This document shows, piece after piece, positions 23,841 to 28,718 of a stretch of DNA of 64,000 nt. A model generated the notes under the pieces. That model was not told the origin of the DNA and made no database searches. It was given only the letters and a program-made list of their open reading frames with translations. Location: IMG/VR virus record IMGVR_UViG_3300009545_000018, positions 186,001 through 250,000 of that record; one strand, 5' to 3'. Made by a program: the position numbers and the translations under genes. Position 1 is the stretch's first letter, and each line of letters starts with the position of its first letter.

Positions 23841-23914
23841 GCTGATTTAGTATAGTGGTATTACCCCGCCCTTGTAACGCGGTCACAACAGTTCGATTCT
23901 GTTAATCAGCTCCA
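23841..23914 (+). tRNA. tRNA-Thr(UGU)
   Basis: Cloverleaf: GCTGATT/AATCAGC acceptor, anticodon loop CT-TGT-AA (C31:C39 mismatch), TTCGATT T-loop, encoded CCA. Confidence 0.9.
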
Positions 23915-23981: not shown

Positions 23982-24056
23982 GCTGTGGTAATTCAGTGAT
24001 AGAATCCCTGCATGGTAAGCAGGTTGTCGCGGGTTTGATTCCCGCCCACAGCTCCA
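23982..24056 (+). tRNA. tRNA-Thr(GGU)
   Basis: GCTGTGG/CCACAGC acceptor, CCTGC-ATGGTAA-GCAGG anticodon arm, GCGGG-TTTGATT-CCCGC T arm, CCA. Confidence 0.9.
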
Positions 24057-24279: not shown

Positions 24280-24633
24280 GGGATCGACATAGTTTCGACG
24301 TGGTTTGAAGTATTGAATTGCAAGTCCCTAATTATTGTCAAAGGGTAATATAAACAATAAACGTTCAAATGCAAACGACAATAGCATTGCTCCATTAGCA
24401 CAAGTTGCTTGATGGATACCTTGAGATGAGATATTTTTGGTAATCAAAAAGGTATTAACCCACTAAAAATAGTTCTTAAATTATCTATGGATTTAAGAAT
24501 AAAATAAACATTAGATAGCCTGTAAAGCAAATTTTACAAATGTTGTTAATTACATTCTTAATTAACTAAACTTGTGAATGATTTTCAATATGAATTATCA
24601 CGGATTCCGGGGCAGTACCGGACGATTCCACCA
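24280..24633 (+). ncRNA. ssrA: tmRNA, one-piece; tag (A)ANDNSIAPLAQVA
   Basis: 5' GGGATCG pairs with 3' CGATTCC-ACCA giving a G3:U70 Ala determinant; TTCGAC 5' motif; tag ORF GCAAACGAC...GCT TGA at 24371-24412; T arm TCCGG-GGCAGTA-CCGGA. Confidence 0.92.
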
Positions 24634-25788: not shown

Positions 25789-25819
25789 TATTGTTATATA
25801 TAAATTAGGAGAAAATTAA

Positions 25820-26401
25820 ATGTTATAGAACGATCTAATCAAAGATATGCAAAACTGCTTACAAACACAAGGGCAGTCTATTTATCAGCACGGGCTCTCA
25901 GTAAAAGAGCATTATTTTGATTTATTATTTATGTTAAAAGAAAATACCGCACTTCCAGGATGGAGGTTACCAGAATGGTTTTTTCAATATCGAGAACAAA
26001 TATTAAATATATTATTGCCCGAAGATATTGTTAAAGAATATCTTATATTTCATGATTGCGGCAAACCTTATTGTTTACTAATTGATGAAGAAGGTGGTAG
26101 ACATTTTCCAAATCATGCAGATAAATCTTATGATATTTGGTTAAAAGTGGGCGGCAATATACAAGCAGCTAAACTTATGAAAATGGATATGTTAATTCAT
26201 AAAATGAAGGCTGTAGATATTGACCAATTTATAAAAAATCCAGAAGCTATTACACTACTTTTAAGTGGATTAGCTGAGACACACTCTAACGCTAAAATGT
26301 TTGGAGGAATAGAATCAGAATCATTTAAGATTAAGTGGAATCAAATTAACAAACGTGGTAAGGTTATTTGTAACAAATTATTTAATACAAAGGAAAAATA
26401 A
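25820..26401 (+). CDS. HD-domain protein with in-frame amber at codon 3 (ORF track starts it at 25847)
   Basis: AGGAG (25807-11), 8 nt, then ATG TTA TAG AAC GAT CTA ATC AAA GAT ATG in frame with the 184-aa ORF; QHG...FHDCGKP...HFPNHA HD motifs. Confidence 0.75.
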
Positions 26402-26746
26402 ATGTCGTAGATTCAATCAAATGATAAATTATATGTTGTGACTCGTGAAGATATTTCAAAAGGATATCAAGGAGTGCAAGGTATACACGCAGCAATTCAG
26501 TTTGCAATTGAACATCCTCAACTTAATAAAGAATGGTTTGAGAAATCTAATTATTTAGGATTTCTATCTGTAAATAATGAAAAAGATTTATTAGATTTGT
26601 CTCAAAAAGCATTAGAACTAGGAATTGAGTTGTCTATATTTAGAGAGCCAGATATAGATAATGCAGTAACTGCAATAGCCTTGGCGCCAGGCAAGAAAAG
26701 TAAAAAACTTTGCAGCAAACTAAATTTAGCTATGAAAGAAAAATAA
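26402..26746 (+). CDS. PTH2-fold (peptidyl-tRNA hydrolase 2/PTRHD1-like) protein with in-frame amber at codon 3 (ORF track starts it at 26438)
   Basis: AAGGA SD and TAA-ATG coupling; ATG TCG TAG ATT CAA TCA AAT GAT AAA TTA TAT GTT GTG; KLYVVTREDI...QGIHAA...FREPDI...VTAIALAP. Confidence 0.8.
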
Positions 26747-26752
26747 ATTTAT

Positions 26753-26874
26753 GCGTCAGTAGCTCAATTAAAGTGAAAGTAGTACATTAACGTGATGTAT
26801 AATAAATGAGTATCTTAAGACCGAGCAGTCCATATTTAATGGAAAGGATGCAAGTGCAAATCTTGCCTGGCGCC
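26753..26874 (+). tRNA. tRNA-like RNA (UUU, Lys-like) with a 57-nt D-loop
   Basis: GCGTCAG/CTGGCGC acceptor, D-stem GCTC (26762-65)/GAGC (26823-26), anticodon loop TA-TTT-AA, GCAAG-TGCAAAT-CTTGC T arm; no encoded CCA. Confidence 0.65.
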
Positions 26875-26880
26875 CTATAT

Positions 26881-26954
26881 TCTCCTGTAAGTTCAGCGGT
26901 TAGAACTATGCTCCCTAAAAGCATTGGTCGTAGGTTCGAATCCTACCAGGAGAG
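26881..26954 (+). tRNA. Amber suppressor tRNA (CUA) #1, U1-A72/G73 body
   Basis: TCTCCTG/CAGGAGA acceptor, ATGCT-CCCTAAA-AGCAT anticodon arm (CTA at 26915-17), GTAGG-TTCGAAT-CCTAC T arm; C33; followed by CAA, not CCA. Confidence 0.8.
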
Positions 26955-26959
26955 CAAAT

Positions 26960-27035
26960 GGTTTGTTAGCTCAGTGATTAGAGCAGAGGATTCTAAAACC
27001 TTTGGTCGTGAGTTTGAATCTCACACAAACCACCA
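26960..27035 (+). tRNA. Amber suppressor tRNA (CUA) #2
   Basis: GGTTTGT/ACAAACC acceptor, GCTC/GAGC D-stem, loop TT-CTA-AA (26993-95), GTGAG-TTTGAAT-CTCAC T arm, A73 and encoded CCA. Confidence 0.85.
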
Positions 27036-27545
27036 ATGAAAAAGTTGCTATTAGAAATAGAATTGATACCAGCATCTTCATGGTATAGCAACGTCAGATC
27101 AAACGTAACTAAAAAGCAATGGGATATTATTAGAAATAAAGTTTATTCTGAAGCCTATAATCTTTGTCAAATATGTGGTGAGCAAGGAAACAAGCACCCA
27201 GTTGAATGTCATGAAATGTGGGAATTTGATGATTTTAAATTAATACAAAAATTAATAGGAATGATAGCATTATGTCCAATGTGTCACGCTACTAAACATT
27301 ATGGTTTATCAAAAATACAAGGTAAAGAAGAGATAATTTTTAATCATTTTATAAAAATTAATAATATTGACAAGGTAGCGGTAAAGCACTACATTGATTC
27401 TGTTTTTAAAATTTGGGAAACACGTAGCCAAAAAGAATGGGAATTAGATATTTCCATATTAAAAAACTATGGAGTAGATATTTATGAATCCAATAATTCA
27501 AAAAAAGATAGAGTTGTTAAAAAATCAACAACAAAAAATAGATGA
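27036..27545 (+). CDS. HNH-type (treble-clef) nuclease-like protein
   Basis: IELIPASSWYSNVRS, CQICG, ECHEMW, IALCPMCH. Confidence 0.78.
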   Translation: MKKLLLEIELIPASSWYSNVRSNVTKKQWDIIRNKVYSEAYNLCQICGEQGNKHPVECHEMWEFDDFKLIQKLIGMIALCPMCHATKHYGLSKIQGKEEIIFNHFIKINNIDKVAVKHYIDSVFKIWETRSQKEWELDISILKNYGVDIYESNNSKKDRVVKKSTTKNR

Positions 27546-28199: not shown

Positions 28200-28718
28200 A
28201 TGATTACTAAGAATAGAGTTAATTTTCAAATAAAAGTGTTGCAAGTTAGATTGATTGATAGTAATGGAGATAATGTTGGAATAATTTCAACACAAGAAGC
28301 TCTAAAAAAAGCCAGAGAACAAAACTTAGATCTTGTTGAAATTAACTCTAAATCATTGCCGCCGGTTTGTAAAATTATTGATTATGGTAAGTTTAAGTAT
28401 GATGAAAAAAAGAAACAAAACGAAGCTAAAAAGAATCATAAAGTTCAAGAATTAAAAGAAATTACTTTTCGCCCTACTACTGATGAGAATGATTTAAATC
28501 ATAAATTGGCTTCTGCACGGAGTTTTCTTGAAGAAGGCGACAAAGTAAAATTTACTATTAGATTTAGAGGTAGAGAAATTGTTCATCCAGAAGTAGGTAG
28601 AGATAGAATTCTTTGGTTATTAGAACAATTAAAGGACATAATTGCAGTACCTCCTCCAATTTCAATGGAAGGGAAATTCATGTCGGTTGTAGTAATGCCA
28701 AGTAAAAAAGGTAACTAA
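28200..28718 (+). CDS. infC: Translation initiation factor IF-3
   Basis: RVNFQI..VRLID, ALKKAREQNLDLVEI, PPVCKIIDYGKFKY, KEITFRP, GDKVKFTIRFRGRE. Confidence 0.95.
   Translation: MITKNRVNFQIKVLQVRLIDSNGDNVGIISTQEALKKAREQNLDLVEINSKSLPPVCKIIDYGKFKYDEKKKQNEAKKNHKVQELKEITFRPTTDENDLNHKLASARSFLEEGDKVKFTIRFRGREIVHPEVGRDRILWLLEQLKDIIAVPPPISMEGKFMSVVVMPSKKGN

Follow-up and report, generated by a model that had tools for sequence, protein, structure and literature searches.

A conserved early stop codon in a jumbo-phage PTH2-like gene and its apparent gating by neighboring suppressor tRNAs

Two adjacent genes share an ATG-x-TAG start

We analyzed a window of 64,000 nucleotides (positions 186,001 to 250,000) of the IMG/VR virus record IMGVR_UViG_3300009545_000018, a jumbo phage of 447,763 bp. 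The features of the locus described here are on the plus strand and are numbered relative to the window. A full PTH2-like gene occupies positions 26402 to 26746. It begins with an ATG (26402-26404) immediately after the TAA stop (26399-26401) of the upstream ORF and is preceded at a distance of 7 nt by an AAGGA Shine-Dalgarno (SD)-like motif (26390-26394). The ATG is followed by TCG, an in-frame amber codon (TAG, 26408-26410) and 111 codons starting with ATT at 26411 and ending at TAA 26744-26746. By contrast, the mechanical ORF call starts at a GTG (26438-26440), which is codon 10 after the TAG and falls inside the KLYVVTR sequence (26426-26446). The earlier note had proposed, from this arrangement, that the gene cannot be complete without reading through the amber codon.

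The upstream gene (25820-26401) has the same layout, with ATG 25820, TTA, an in-frame TAG (25826-25828) and 190 codons to TAA 26399-26401. An AGGAG SD-like motif (25807-25811) lies 8 nt before its ATG. SD-like 4-mers precede 39% of the first ATGs of long ORFs in this genome, against 9.4% of random ATGs. Such motifs precede both upstream ATGs but neither GTG 26438 nor ATG 25847, an internal ATG of the upstream gene.

Three tRNA or tRNA-like elements follow the PTH2-like gene. A tRNA-like element with a 54-nt insertion in the D-loop (26753-26874) starts 6 nt after the stop codon; it scores 38.7 bits with the Rfam tRNA model (gathering score 29) but is not called by ARAGORN. Two tRNA(CUA) genes are found 135 nt downstream of the PTH2-like gene by both ARAGORN and Rfam. 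The first (26881-26955, 58.4 bits) has a U1-A72 pair, G73, no encoded CCA and an unusual C at position 33. The second (26960-27035, 63.9 bits) has G1-C72, A73, an encoded CCA and a canonical anticodon loop. Apart from tRNAs and a tmRNA, no ribozyme or other Rfam family was found between 23500 and 29000 at E up to 0.1. Promoter-like sites are not above the shuffled expectation, and we found no plus-strand terminator between the gene and the tRNAs.

Predicted fold and family of the two proteins

The sequence after the TAG matches Pfam PTH2 (PF01981) with 35.6 bits (cut-off 23, E=1.2e-8, profile positions 2-104 of 115; 34.8 bits in the genome search). The match starts at the Lys of KLYVVTR, which is profile position 2. 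An AlphaFold model (pLDDT 95.9) places strand beta-1 at residues 6-12, KLYVVTR, and the Lys is invariant in 18 diverse homologues. Foldseek aligns the model to archaeal Pth2 and human Bit1/PTRH2 (PDB 2zv3, 3erj, 1xty and 1q7s) with TM 0.75-0.81 and E about 1e-8, and the overall size and the HA motif of helix 1 are conserved. Nevertheless, the protein scores far below the NCBIfam equivalog cut-offs (NF003314, 32.6 bits against 126; TIGR00283, 32.0 bits against 82).

In an HMM alignment to solved Pth2 structures, the catalytic Lys of the GK motif aligns with an invariant Tyr (26465-26467) and the catalytic Asp of the DAG motif aligns with the Glu of an invariant FREPDIDN motif (26639-26662), with a 2-residue and a 4-residue deletion around these sites. 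The caution in the earlier note that hydrolase activity is not guaranteed therefore holds. Its remark that the sequence looks closer to PTRHD1-like members is not borne out by fold ranking, in which the top 30 Swiss-Prot matches are all PTH2, although this is not a direct comparison with a PTRHD1 sequence. The family is almost exclusively phage-encoded; the one hit in a cellular genome is a 425-kb contig identical in length and coordinates to an IMG/VR phage contig. The same phage also encodes a canonical PTH2 without any early stop.

The upstream protein resembles the C-terminal HD domain of bacterial (class II) CCA-adding enzymes. ESM Atlas structural matches to the HD domain of PolyA_pol/CCA-adding enzymes have TM 0.76-0.82 by query, PHROG 14850 matches at E=1e-63 and the protein keeps an HD...H-type motif, HDCGKP. 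Conversely, there is no significant Pfam HD hit for the window protein, which is a stand-alone protein of about 190 aa with no nucleotidyltransferase head. The phage encodes separate PolyA_pol-type genes elsewhere. The HD-like domain is fused in frame with the PTH2-like domain in three lineages, represented by the related loci L025/L107 and L108 and by Xanthomonas phage Xoo-sp13.

The early stop is conserved at one position

We next examined 77 non-duplicate related loci at 38-100% identity. In 76 of them, an in-frame ATG lies 1-10 codons before an in-frame stop (1-4 codons in 70 of 77), and in 75 of the 77 this stop lies 1-12 codons before the invariant Lys. The stop is TAG in 68, TAA in 5 and TGA in 4. 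The 68 TAG-type genes hold 7,346 codons and 69 TAGs, of which 68 are at this one site, against 414 CAA/CAG codons. The base after the stop is a purine in 75 of 77 (A in the window gene), a context known from established E. coli work to favor tRNA suppression. The first canonical start after the stop lies beyond the invariant Lys in 74 of 77 loci; it is at least 16 codons inside the domain in 40 and absent in 5. In the HD-like family, ATG plus 1-4 codons plus TAG is present in 14 of 14 homologues that are separate genes, although the HD-like gene has a conserved internal ATG 6 codons after its TAG that could serve as a start. A blind scan of the loci for ATG, 0-4 codons, TAG and an open frame of at least 70 codons gave 102 hits, of which 71 are PTH2-like and 15 are HD-like.

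The stop type matches the anticodon of the linked suppressor. A tRNA(CUA) lies in the same locus in 44 TAG cases, and the only two loci in which a tRNA(UCA) was found, L090 and L108, have TGA at the site (Fisher p 0.001-0.003). No TAG was found next to tRNA(UCA). One TGA locus with a tRNA(CUA), L027, has its own ATG after the TGA. The linkage is not complete: twenty-four TAG-type loci show no tRNA(CUA), many of them short contigs but some with 6 kb of flank, and the five TAA-type loci, all on short contigs, have no detected tRNA(UUA). The TGA and TAA variants are nested in different TAG clades, so the switches were independent.

The genome is otherwise in the standard code

The phage encodes RF2 (prfB, TIGR00020, 398 bits against a cut-off of 370; an uninterrupted 359-aa ORF), which reads UAA and UGA but not UAG. 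To test for genome-wide recoding, we compared ORF statistics under four stop sets, stop usage, and codon-usage scores on both sides of every stop. Standard-code ORFs of at least 100 aa already cover about 90% of the genome, and long ORFs end in TAA (219), TGA (81) and TAG (14). Only 4 TAGs have coding-like sequence on both sides, compared with 13 TGA and 40 TAA controls, and at least two of these (88011 and 74454) are ordinary gene ends followed by a start codon. Coding-like cases of ATG, 1-6 codons, then TAG number eight in the genome, no more than the TGA/TAA controls when scaled by triplet frequency, and all except the PTH2-like and HD-like genes have an obvious downstream start or look spurious. 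No special pattern of backup stops was found after TAG-terminated genes.

Among the tRNAs compared, the U1-A72 pair of the first tRNA(CUA) is otherwise seen only in the phage's tRNA-Gln genes, and together with G73 it suggests that insertion of Gln by this tRNA is plausible. However, the second tRNA(CUA) and the linked suppressors of relatives fall into several acceptor types, no GlnRS/GluRS gene is present, and a second TAG in the related locus L024 aligns with Q/E/D/T.

Discussion

Taken together, these data strongly support the inference of the earlier note that read-through of the codon-3 amber is required, with a probability for our overall reading of roughly 0.78. The note did not include four observations that explain the feature: the two amber-suppressor tRNA genes, the position-specific conservation of the stop, the match between stop type and suppressor anticodon, and the same start in the HD-like gene. 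We propose that the gene is a stop-codon-gated PTH2-fold gene belonging to the suppressor-tRNA module of the phage. Ribosomes would start at ATG 26402, add Ser and meet UAG at codon 3. Without a suppressor, release factor 1 would end translation after a dipeptide. When the tRNA(CUA) genes 135-290 nt downstream (26881-27035) are expressed, matured and charged, the UAG would be decoded and the full 114-residue protein made. Both products would therefore be made in proportion to suppressor activity, and because the genome is otherwise in the standard code, the early stop would act as a sensor or gate rather than as ordinary recoding. This reading is inferred from comparative genomics only, without expression, proteomic or biochemical evidence, and it leaves unexplained why a standard-code phage keeps suppressors at all.

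That the two proteins act on tRNA 3' ends is likewise inferred. The PTH2-like protein would act as an esterase with a non-canonical Tyr/Glu site on peptidyl-, N-acyl- or aminoacyl-tRNA, and the HD protein would heal 3' ends. Their job would be either to cope with the consequences of read-through (a feed-forward, alongside the phage tmRNA and canonical PTH2) or to set the level of suppressor activity (a feedback). A more speculative and rather unlikely possibility is a closed control loop, in which both proteins act on the 3' end of the suppressor tRNA itself by deacylating it, hydrolyzing its peptidyl form, or healing or trimming its CCA end, while their own synthesis requires that tRNA. Such a module would be a homeostat or, if the action is activating, a bistable switch setting how strongly stop codons are read through in the infected cell. 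It would be a tRNA-level analogue of RF2 autoregulation, retargeted independently to UGA, and probably to UAA, by paired changes of the stop and the anticodon.

Alternatively, the TAG could be one Gln codon in a phage that reads TAG as Gln everywhere (code 15). Suppressor tRNAs and RF2 are indeed hallmarks of TAG-recoded phages (preprint 10.1101/2021.08.26.457843), public gene callers translated the site as Q under code 15, and L024/L026 and LR756501 have a second in-frame TAG. We consider this unlikely given the standard-code genome, the retention of the stop at one site and its change to TGA or TAA while staying in place; no homologue with a linked suppressor has a sense codon there. About equally improbable, the ATG-x-TAG could be a tiny upstream ORF, with the enzyme translated by re-initiation at or just after the stop. 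In Mycobacterium cluster C phages the layout is ATG or GTG, then TAG, then GTG, and the SD spacing favors the GTG after the TAG, which in IkeLoa and Myrna is the annotated start, so the protein could be made there without suppression. The internal ATG of the HD-like gene and the frequent ATT or ATA after the stop, which are near-cognate starts, also fit this view. However, in 29 of 77 loci the next codon begins with G (mainly GTT, GTA or GTC), and these are not start codons; no canonical start is conserved before the invariant Lys. Re-initiation predicts neither the match between stop type and anticodon nor a mini-ORF in frame with the enzyme in 76 of 77 loci.

A start at GTG 26438, with the TAG merely bounding the open frame, is less likely still. 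GTG is a legal start and many database entries are called that way, but this start removes the invariant Lys and four residues of beta-1, lacks an SD-like motif, is not a start in most homologues and leaves the conserved in-frame ATG unexplained. Homologues appear to start at the VVTR position only because database proteins are truncated code-11 calls, and those showing Q at the site are code-15 calls of a stop. Finally, a stop at codon 3 is what a nonsense mutation would look like, but a pseudogene or assembly error is refuted by the presence of the same layout in about 70 independent assemblies and in GenBank phage genomes and by strong protein-level conservation, with 16 invariant residues.

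In the literature examined, we found no description of an early stop in PTH2-like or HD genes. The code-change modules of alternatively coded phages (preprint 10.1101/2021.08.26.457843) combine suppressor tRNAs, release factors and aaRS. The present phage likewise encodes a suppressor tRNA(CUA) and RF2; in both cases TAG is depleted as a terminator, and in-frame stops would make translation of particular genes depend on the suppressor. In those modules, however, the genes are in the standard code, and 26-71% of the phage's genes, notably lysis and structural genes, carry in-frame stops. Here, the gated genes are two inferred tRNA-end enzymes next to the tRNAs, each with a single stop 1-10 codons after the ATG at a position conserved across lineages. 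A PTH2 of jumbo phages has been proposed for ribosome rescue (Iyer et al. 2021, PMC7824862), and the present protein is likewise a jumbo-phage PTH2-fold protein encoded among tRNA, tmRNA and IF3 genes; that paper mentions neither an early stop nor suppressor linkage, and the present protein belongs to the divergent FREPDIDN subfamily rather than being the canonical enzyme. The arrangement also resembles the established decoding sensors of prfB, where an in-frame UGA senses RF2, and infC, where an AUU start senses IF3, in that an early, conserved decoding obstacle makes synthesis of a translation-related protein report on one decoding activity. Here no frameshift is involved, and the sensed activity would be a suppressor tRNA rather than the product itself.

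These results also bear on annotation. Standard gene callers truncate this family and code-15 callers write a Gln that has not been shown, so database entries are systematically wrong at the N-terminus. Related genes with an adjacent tRNA(CUA) exist in cultured Mycobacterium smegmatis phages, making experiments feasible, and the compact leader-plus-tRNA pairs could serve as natural orthogonal translational switches. Phage suppressor tRNAs are currently seen as tools for genome-wide code change that delays late genes. In this standard-code jumbo phage, the only conserved in-frame stops sit at the very start of two putative tRNA-end enzymes next to the suppressors, and the stop type tracks the anticodon across independent lineages. 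This points to a dedicated sensor of suppressor activity and gives a concrete, testable handle on how phages control or cope with stop-codon read-through.

An in-frame amber at codon 3 of the PTH2-like gene

The + strand reads TAA (26399-26401, the end of the upstream ORF), ATG 26402, TCG, TAG 26408-26410, ATT 26411 and then an open frame of 111 codons to TAA 26744-26746. An AAGGA motif lies at 26390-94, 7 nt before the ATG, whereas the mechanical ORF list starts the gene at GTG 26438. The sequence downstream of the TAG matches the Pfam PTH2 domain (PF01981; E=1.2e-8, 35.6 bits, cut-off 23), and the match begins at the Lys of KLYVV, which is profile position 2. An AlphaFold model built on 18 homologues has a pLDDT of 95.9 and places strand beta-1 on residues 6-12, KLYVVTR, with the GTG at residue 10. 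The observation in the earlier note, that the GTG start falls inside this strand while the upstream ATG follows a Shine-Dalgarno (SD) motif and abuts the previous stop, is therefore correct as written.

Genomic context

The gene is carried by a 447,763-bp virus record with 31% G+C from a rhizosphere metagenome (hereafter G000), of which the window covers bases 186001-250000. Six bases after the stop codon of the gene lies a tRNA-like element (26753-26874, + strand) that is found by the Rfam tRNA model (38.7 bits, full model) but not by ARAGORN. This element has a 54-nt insertion in the D-loop that folds into its own hairpin and an odd anticodon loop (UAUUUAA, with A at position 33), and it could be an interrupted tRNA, a tRNA with an unusual intron, or a processing signal. 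Two tRNA(CUA) genes follow on the + strand at 26881-26955 and 26960-27035, and no + strand terminator-like site separates the PTH2-like gene from the tRNAs. The first tRNA(CUA) has C rather than the near-universal U at position 33, an extra base between the acceptor and D stems and no encoded CCA, and it shares U1-A72/G73 with the tRNA-Gln(UUG) of the phage. The second is canonical and encodes CCA. The ATG of an HNH endonuclease gene (27036-27545, + strand; PHROG 5200, E=1e-52) directly abuts this CCA end, and the gene is conserved at this place in seven relatives.

Nearby are two tRNA-Thr genes (23841-23914 and 23982-24056), just downstream of which lies a tmRNA (24280-24633, + strand; Rfam RF00023, 51.4 bits against a gathering score of 47), and a full-length translation initiation factor IF3 gene (28200-28718, + strand; TIGR00168, 206 bits). 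A tmRNA is also found near the PTH2-like gene in the related loci L048 and L027, and the IF3 gene is conserved downstream of the module in the related loci L004 and L006-L008. In L048 the IF3 homologue is itself preceded by an in-frame ATG-x-TAG, although this is a single case and may be due to chance. Elsewhere the phage encodes 37 tRNAs, two PolyA_pol-type (CCA-adding-like) genes, RF2 and a canonical PTH2. The RF2 gene (prfB, 398 bits; 425360-426439 of G000, corresponding to 835-1914 of the fetched locus L032) is one uninterrupted 359-aa ORF without the programmed +1 frameshift typical of bacterial prfB. The canonical PTH2 gene (154530-154973 of G000, 1444-1887 of locus L030; Pfam 84 bits) has the GK and DAG motifs and an ordinary ATG start. 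The phage thus carries both a standard and a divergent, gated PTH2-fold protein.

We next asked whether the amber could reflect a general recoding of the genome. Standard-code open frames of at least 100 aa already cover about 90% of the genome, and treating TAG as sense barely adds long ORFs. Long ORFs end in TAA 219 times, TGA 81 times and TAG 14 times. Only 4 TAGs have coding-like sequence on both sides, against 13 TGA and 40 TAA, and at least two of the four are ordinary gene ends followed by an SD and a start codon. The amber at codon 3 is therefore not one of thousands of recoded codons. A possible internal amber read-through was noted at 116475-117008 of G000 (locus L119), where a 71-codon zinc-finger-like piece and a 106-codon endonuclease-like piece are in the same frame, separated only by TAG 116688, with no start codon soon after the TAG.

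The early stop is conserved in position

A protein search identified 220 relatives, many of them on contigs of 150-510 kb. Their called N-termini fall into two classes, namely truncated forms such as MITR, VITR, LYVITR or forms starting still deeper in the domain, and full forms with Q at the site, such as MSQIK and MCLQIK. We fetched the DNA of two of the Q forms and found a stop at the site in both, so the Q is a code-15 gene call. Public protein collections hold this family in two wrong forms (for example entries P0003, P0012, P0016 and P0041; loci L028:220-567 and L029:195-545), some truncated at an internal GTG, TTG or ATG by code-11 calls, others with a Gln written at the stop by code-15 calls although the inserted residue is undetermined.

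We then collected 25 viral, 80 metagenomic and 8 GenBank loci. In 77 non-duplicate viral and metagenomic loci at 38-100% identity, the first stop upstream of the invariant Lys is TAG in 68, TAA in 5 and TGA in 4, and in 75 of the 77 it lies 1-12 codons before the Lys. An in-frame ATG lies 1-4 codons before that stop in 70 loci and 1-10 codons before it in 76. The base after the stop is A in 46, G in 29, C in 2 and T in 0. The first canonical start after the stop is at or before the invariant Lys in only 3 loci, at least 16 codons inside the domain in 40, and absent in 5. The 68 TAG-type genes contain 7,346 codons with one further TAG and 414 CAA/CAG. The stop is thus a position-specific conserved element and not a synonym of Gln codons. 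The gene cannot be expressed from an internal start in most lineages.

The stop type matches the linked suppressor tRNA

A tRNA(CUA) lies within the fetched flanks in 44 of the 68 TAG loci, commonly within a few hundred bases on either side, and many of the other 24 loci are short contigs. Linked suppressors in relatives fall into several acceptor-stem classes. The only two loci with a tRNA(UCA) are L090 and L108, and both have TGA at the early site (MKW-TGA-VNEHSKLYVV and MKKTFDNL-TGA-..., respectively). Fisher's exact p is 0.001, or 0.003 if locus L027 is counted, which has a TGA boundary but also its own ATG after it. Four homologues on short metagenome contigs (L084, L102, L106 and L112) have TAA rather than TAG or TGA at the early site, after an in-frame ATG, which would need an ochre suppressor tRNA(UUA). 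None is found on these short contigs.

On a maximum-likelihood tree the TGA and TAA variants are scattered among TAG clades, with L090 sister to L022, L108 to L025, L106 to L096 and L084 to L052. Well-supported branches force at least three changes for each of the TGA and TAA types. The stop and the anticodon therefore changed together at least twice. This is what read-through by the linked tRNA predicts, and the rival explanations do not predict it.

A second gated gene

The upstream ORF is preceded by AGGAG (25807-11), ATG 25820, TTA and TAG 25826-8, after which the frame continues (NDLIKDMQNC...) to 26401. The same layout of ATG, 1-4 codons and TAG is present in all 14 homologues that are separate genes. 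The residues between the TAG and the next Met are conserved, and they are retained where the domain is fused downstream of the PTH2-like domain and so must be translated (in loci L025/L107 behind a TAG gate and in L108 behind a TGA gate). In Xanthomonas phage Xoo-sp13 the two domains are fused in the other order, with no stop and no nearby suppressor. In most close relatives (L003-L008, L017, L037 and others) the HD-like ORF runs in frame through the PTH2-like ATG and ends at the same TAG. Suppression would then also produce an HD-PTH2-like fusion, as is hard-wired in Xoo-sp13. In the window a TAA (26399-26401) separates the two genes, although they remain in the same frame. The HD-like protein has no significant Pfam hit, but its Atlas model (pTM 0.90) matches the C-terminal HD domain of bacterial CCA-adding enzymes at TM 0.76-0.82.

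In this genome SD-like motifs precede 39% of the starts of long ORFs against 9.4% of random ATGs. Both upstream ATGs have one, whereas GTG 26438 and ATG 25847 do not. To ask how specific the layout is, we performed a blind scan of all loci for ATG, 0-4 codons, TAG and an open frame of at least 70 codons. The scan gives 102 hits, against 32 for TAA and 12 for TGA. Of the 102, 71 are PTH2-like, 15 are HD-like and 16 are mostly spurious. In G000 itself no other convincing case exists. The design is specific to two tRNA-end-enzyme-like genes.

Predicted fold and conserved residues of the PTH2-like protein

The predicted fold is Pth2, with TM 0.75-0.81 to 2zv3, 3erj, 1q7s and 1xty, and all of the top 30 Swiss-Prot matches are Pth2. 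The protein nevertheless belongs to a distinct subfamily. The invariant residues are K6, Y19, Q20, Q23, H26, W42, L52, FREPDIDN (77-84) and T87. In the HMM alignment the catalytic Lys of the GK motif is replaced by Tyr19 and the Asp of DAG by Glu79, with small deletions next to both, and the protein scores far below the NCBIfam Pth2 equivalog thresholds. We regard it as a PTH2-superfamily member with a non-canonical, strictly conserved active site, for which peptidyl-tRNA hydrolase activity is not established. The family is almost confined to phages, and the Atlas clusters are 75-100% viral. The one hit in 185,579 species genomes is a 425-kb contig (L033; JBBACR010000001.1, 425,361 bp) filed as part of a 'Candidatus Pacearchaeota archaeon' MAG, which is the same sequence as an IMG/VR viral contig of the same length and coordinates (L011) and is probably a jumbo phage binned into an archaeal MAG.

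Ungated members and the mycobacteriophage case

Homologues without an early stop occur in Aeromonas phage ZPAH1, Xoo-sp13 and Prevotella phage Lak-B9. None has a tRNA(CUA) in the 2.5-kb flanks, although Lak-B9 has a tRNA(UUA) about 570 nt upstream of its ungated homologue (L125:1856-1928). The huge phages LR756500, LR756501 and LR756504 have M-x-TAG. In Mycobacterium cluster C phages, 206 records are annotated 'peptidyl tRNA hydrolase' or hypothetical. In these cultured phages the layout is ATG-TAG-GTG (IkeLoa; L120, 2483-2491) or GTG-TAG-GTG (Myrna; L121, 2474-2482), with a tRNA(CUA) 130-250 nt downstream that is labelled tRNA-Ser in the GenBank record of Myrna, and the motif is xEPDLGDE rather than FREPDIDN. 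The SD spacing favours the GTG after the TAG, so suppression may not be needed in those phages. This is the main caveat to a universal read-through model, in what is also the most accessible experimental system.

Relation to known systems and possible role of the gate

Phage suppressor tRNAs, RF2 and stop-codon gating of late genes are known (10.1101/2021.08.26.457843; PMC13037316), and so is PTH2 in jumbo phages (PMC7824862). In the described code-change modules the module genes are in the standard code and many other genes carry stops. Here the reverse holds. We found no paper that describes an early stop in PTH2-like or HD genes, or its match with the anticodon.

Sequence and comparison show that the start, the stop and the ORF are in one frame, and that the stop is conserved in position and matches the linked suppressor. 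From this we infer that without the suppressor, translation ends after 2-10 residues, and that with the suppressor the full-length proteins are made in proportion to its activity. The purine after the stop fits the context that classically favours efficient tRNA suppression in E. coli. The gate may serve one of two uses. Most linked suppressors lack an encoded CCA (52 of 67), which makes 3'-end metabolism relevant but does not decide between the two models. In a feed-forward model, read-through of host and phage stops creates stalled ribosomes and peptidyl-tRNA, and rescue or repair enzymes would be produced in step with suppression, the phage also carrying a tmRNA nearby and a canonical PTH2. 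Alternatively, in a feedback model, the enzymes would act on the 3' end of the suppressor tRNA itself and set its activity, by analogy with prfB and infC.
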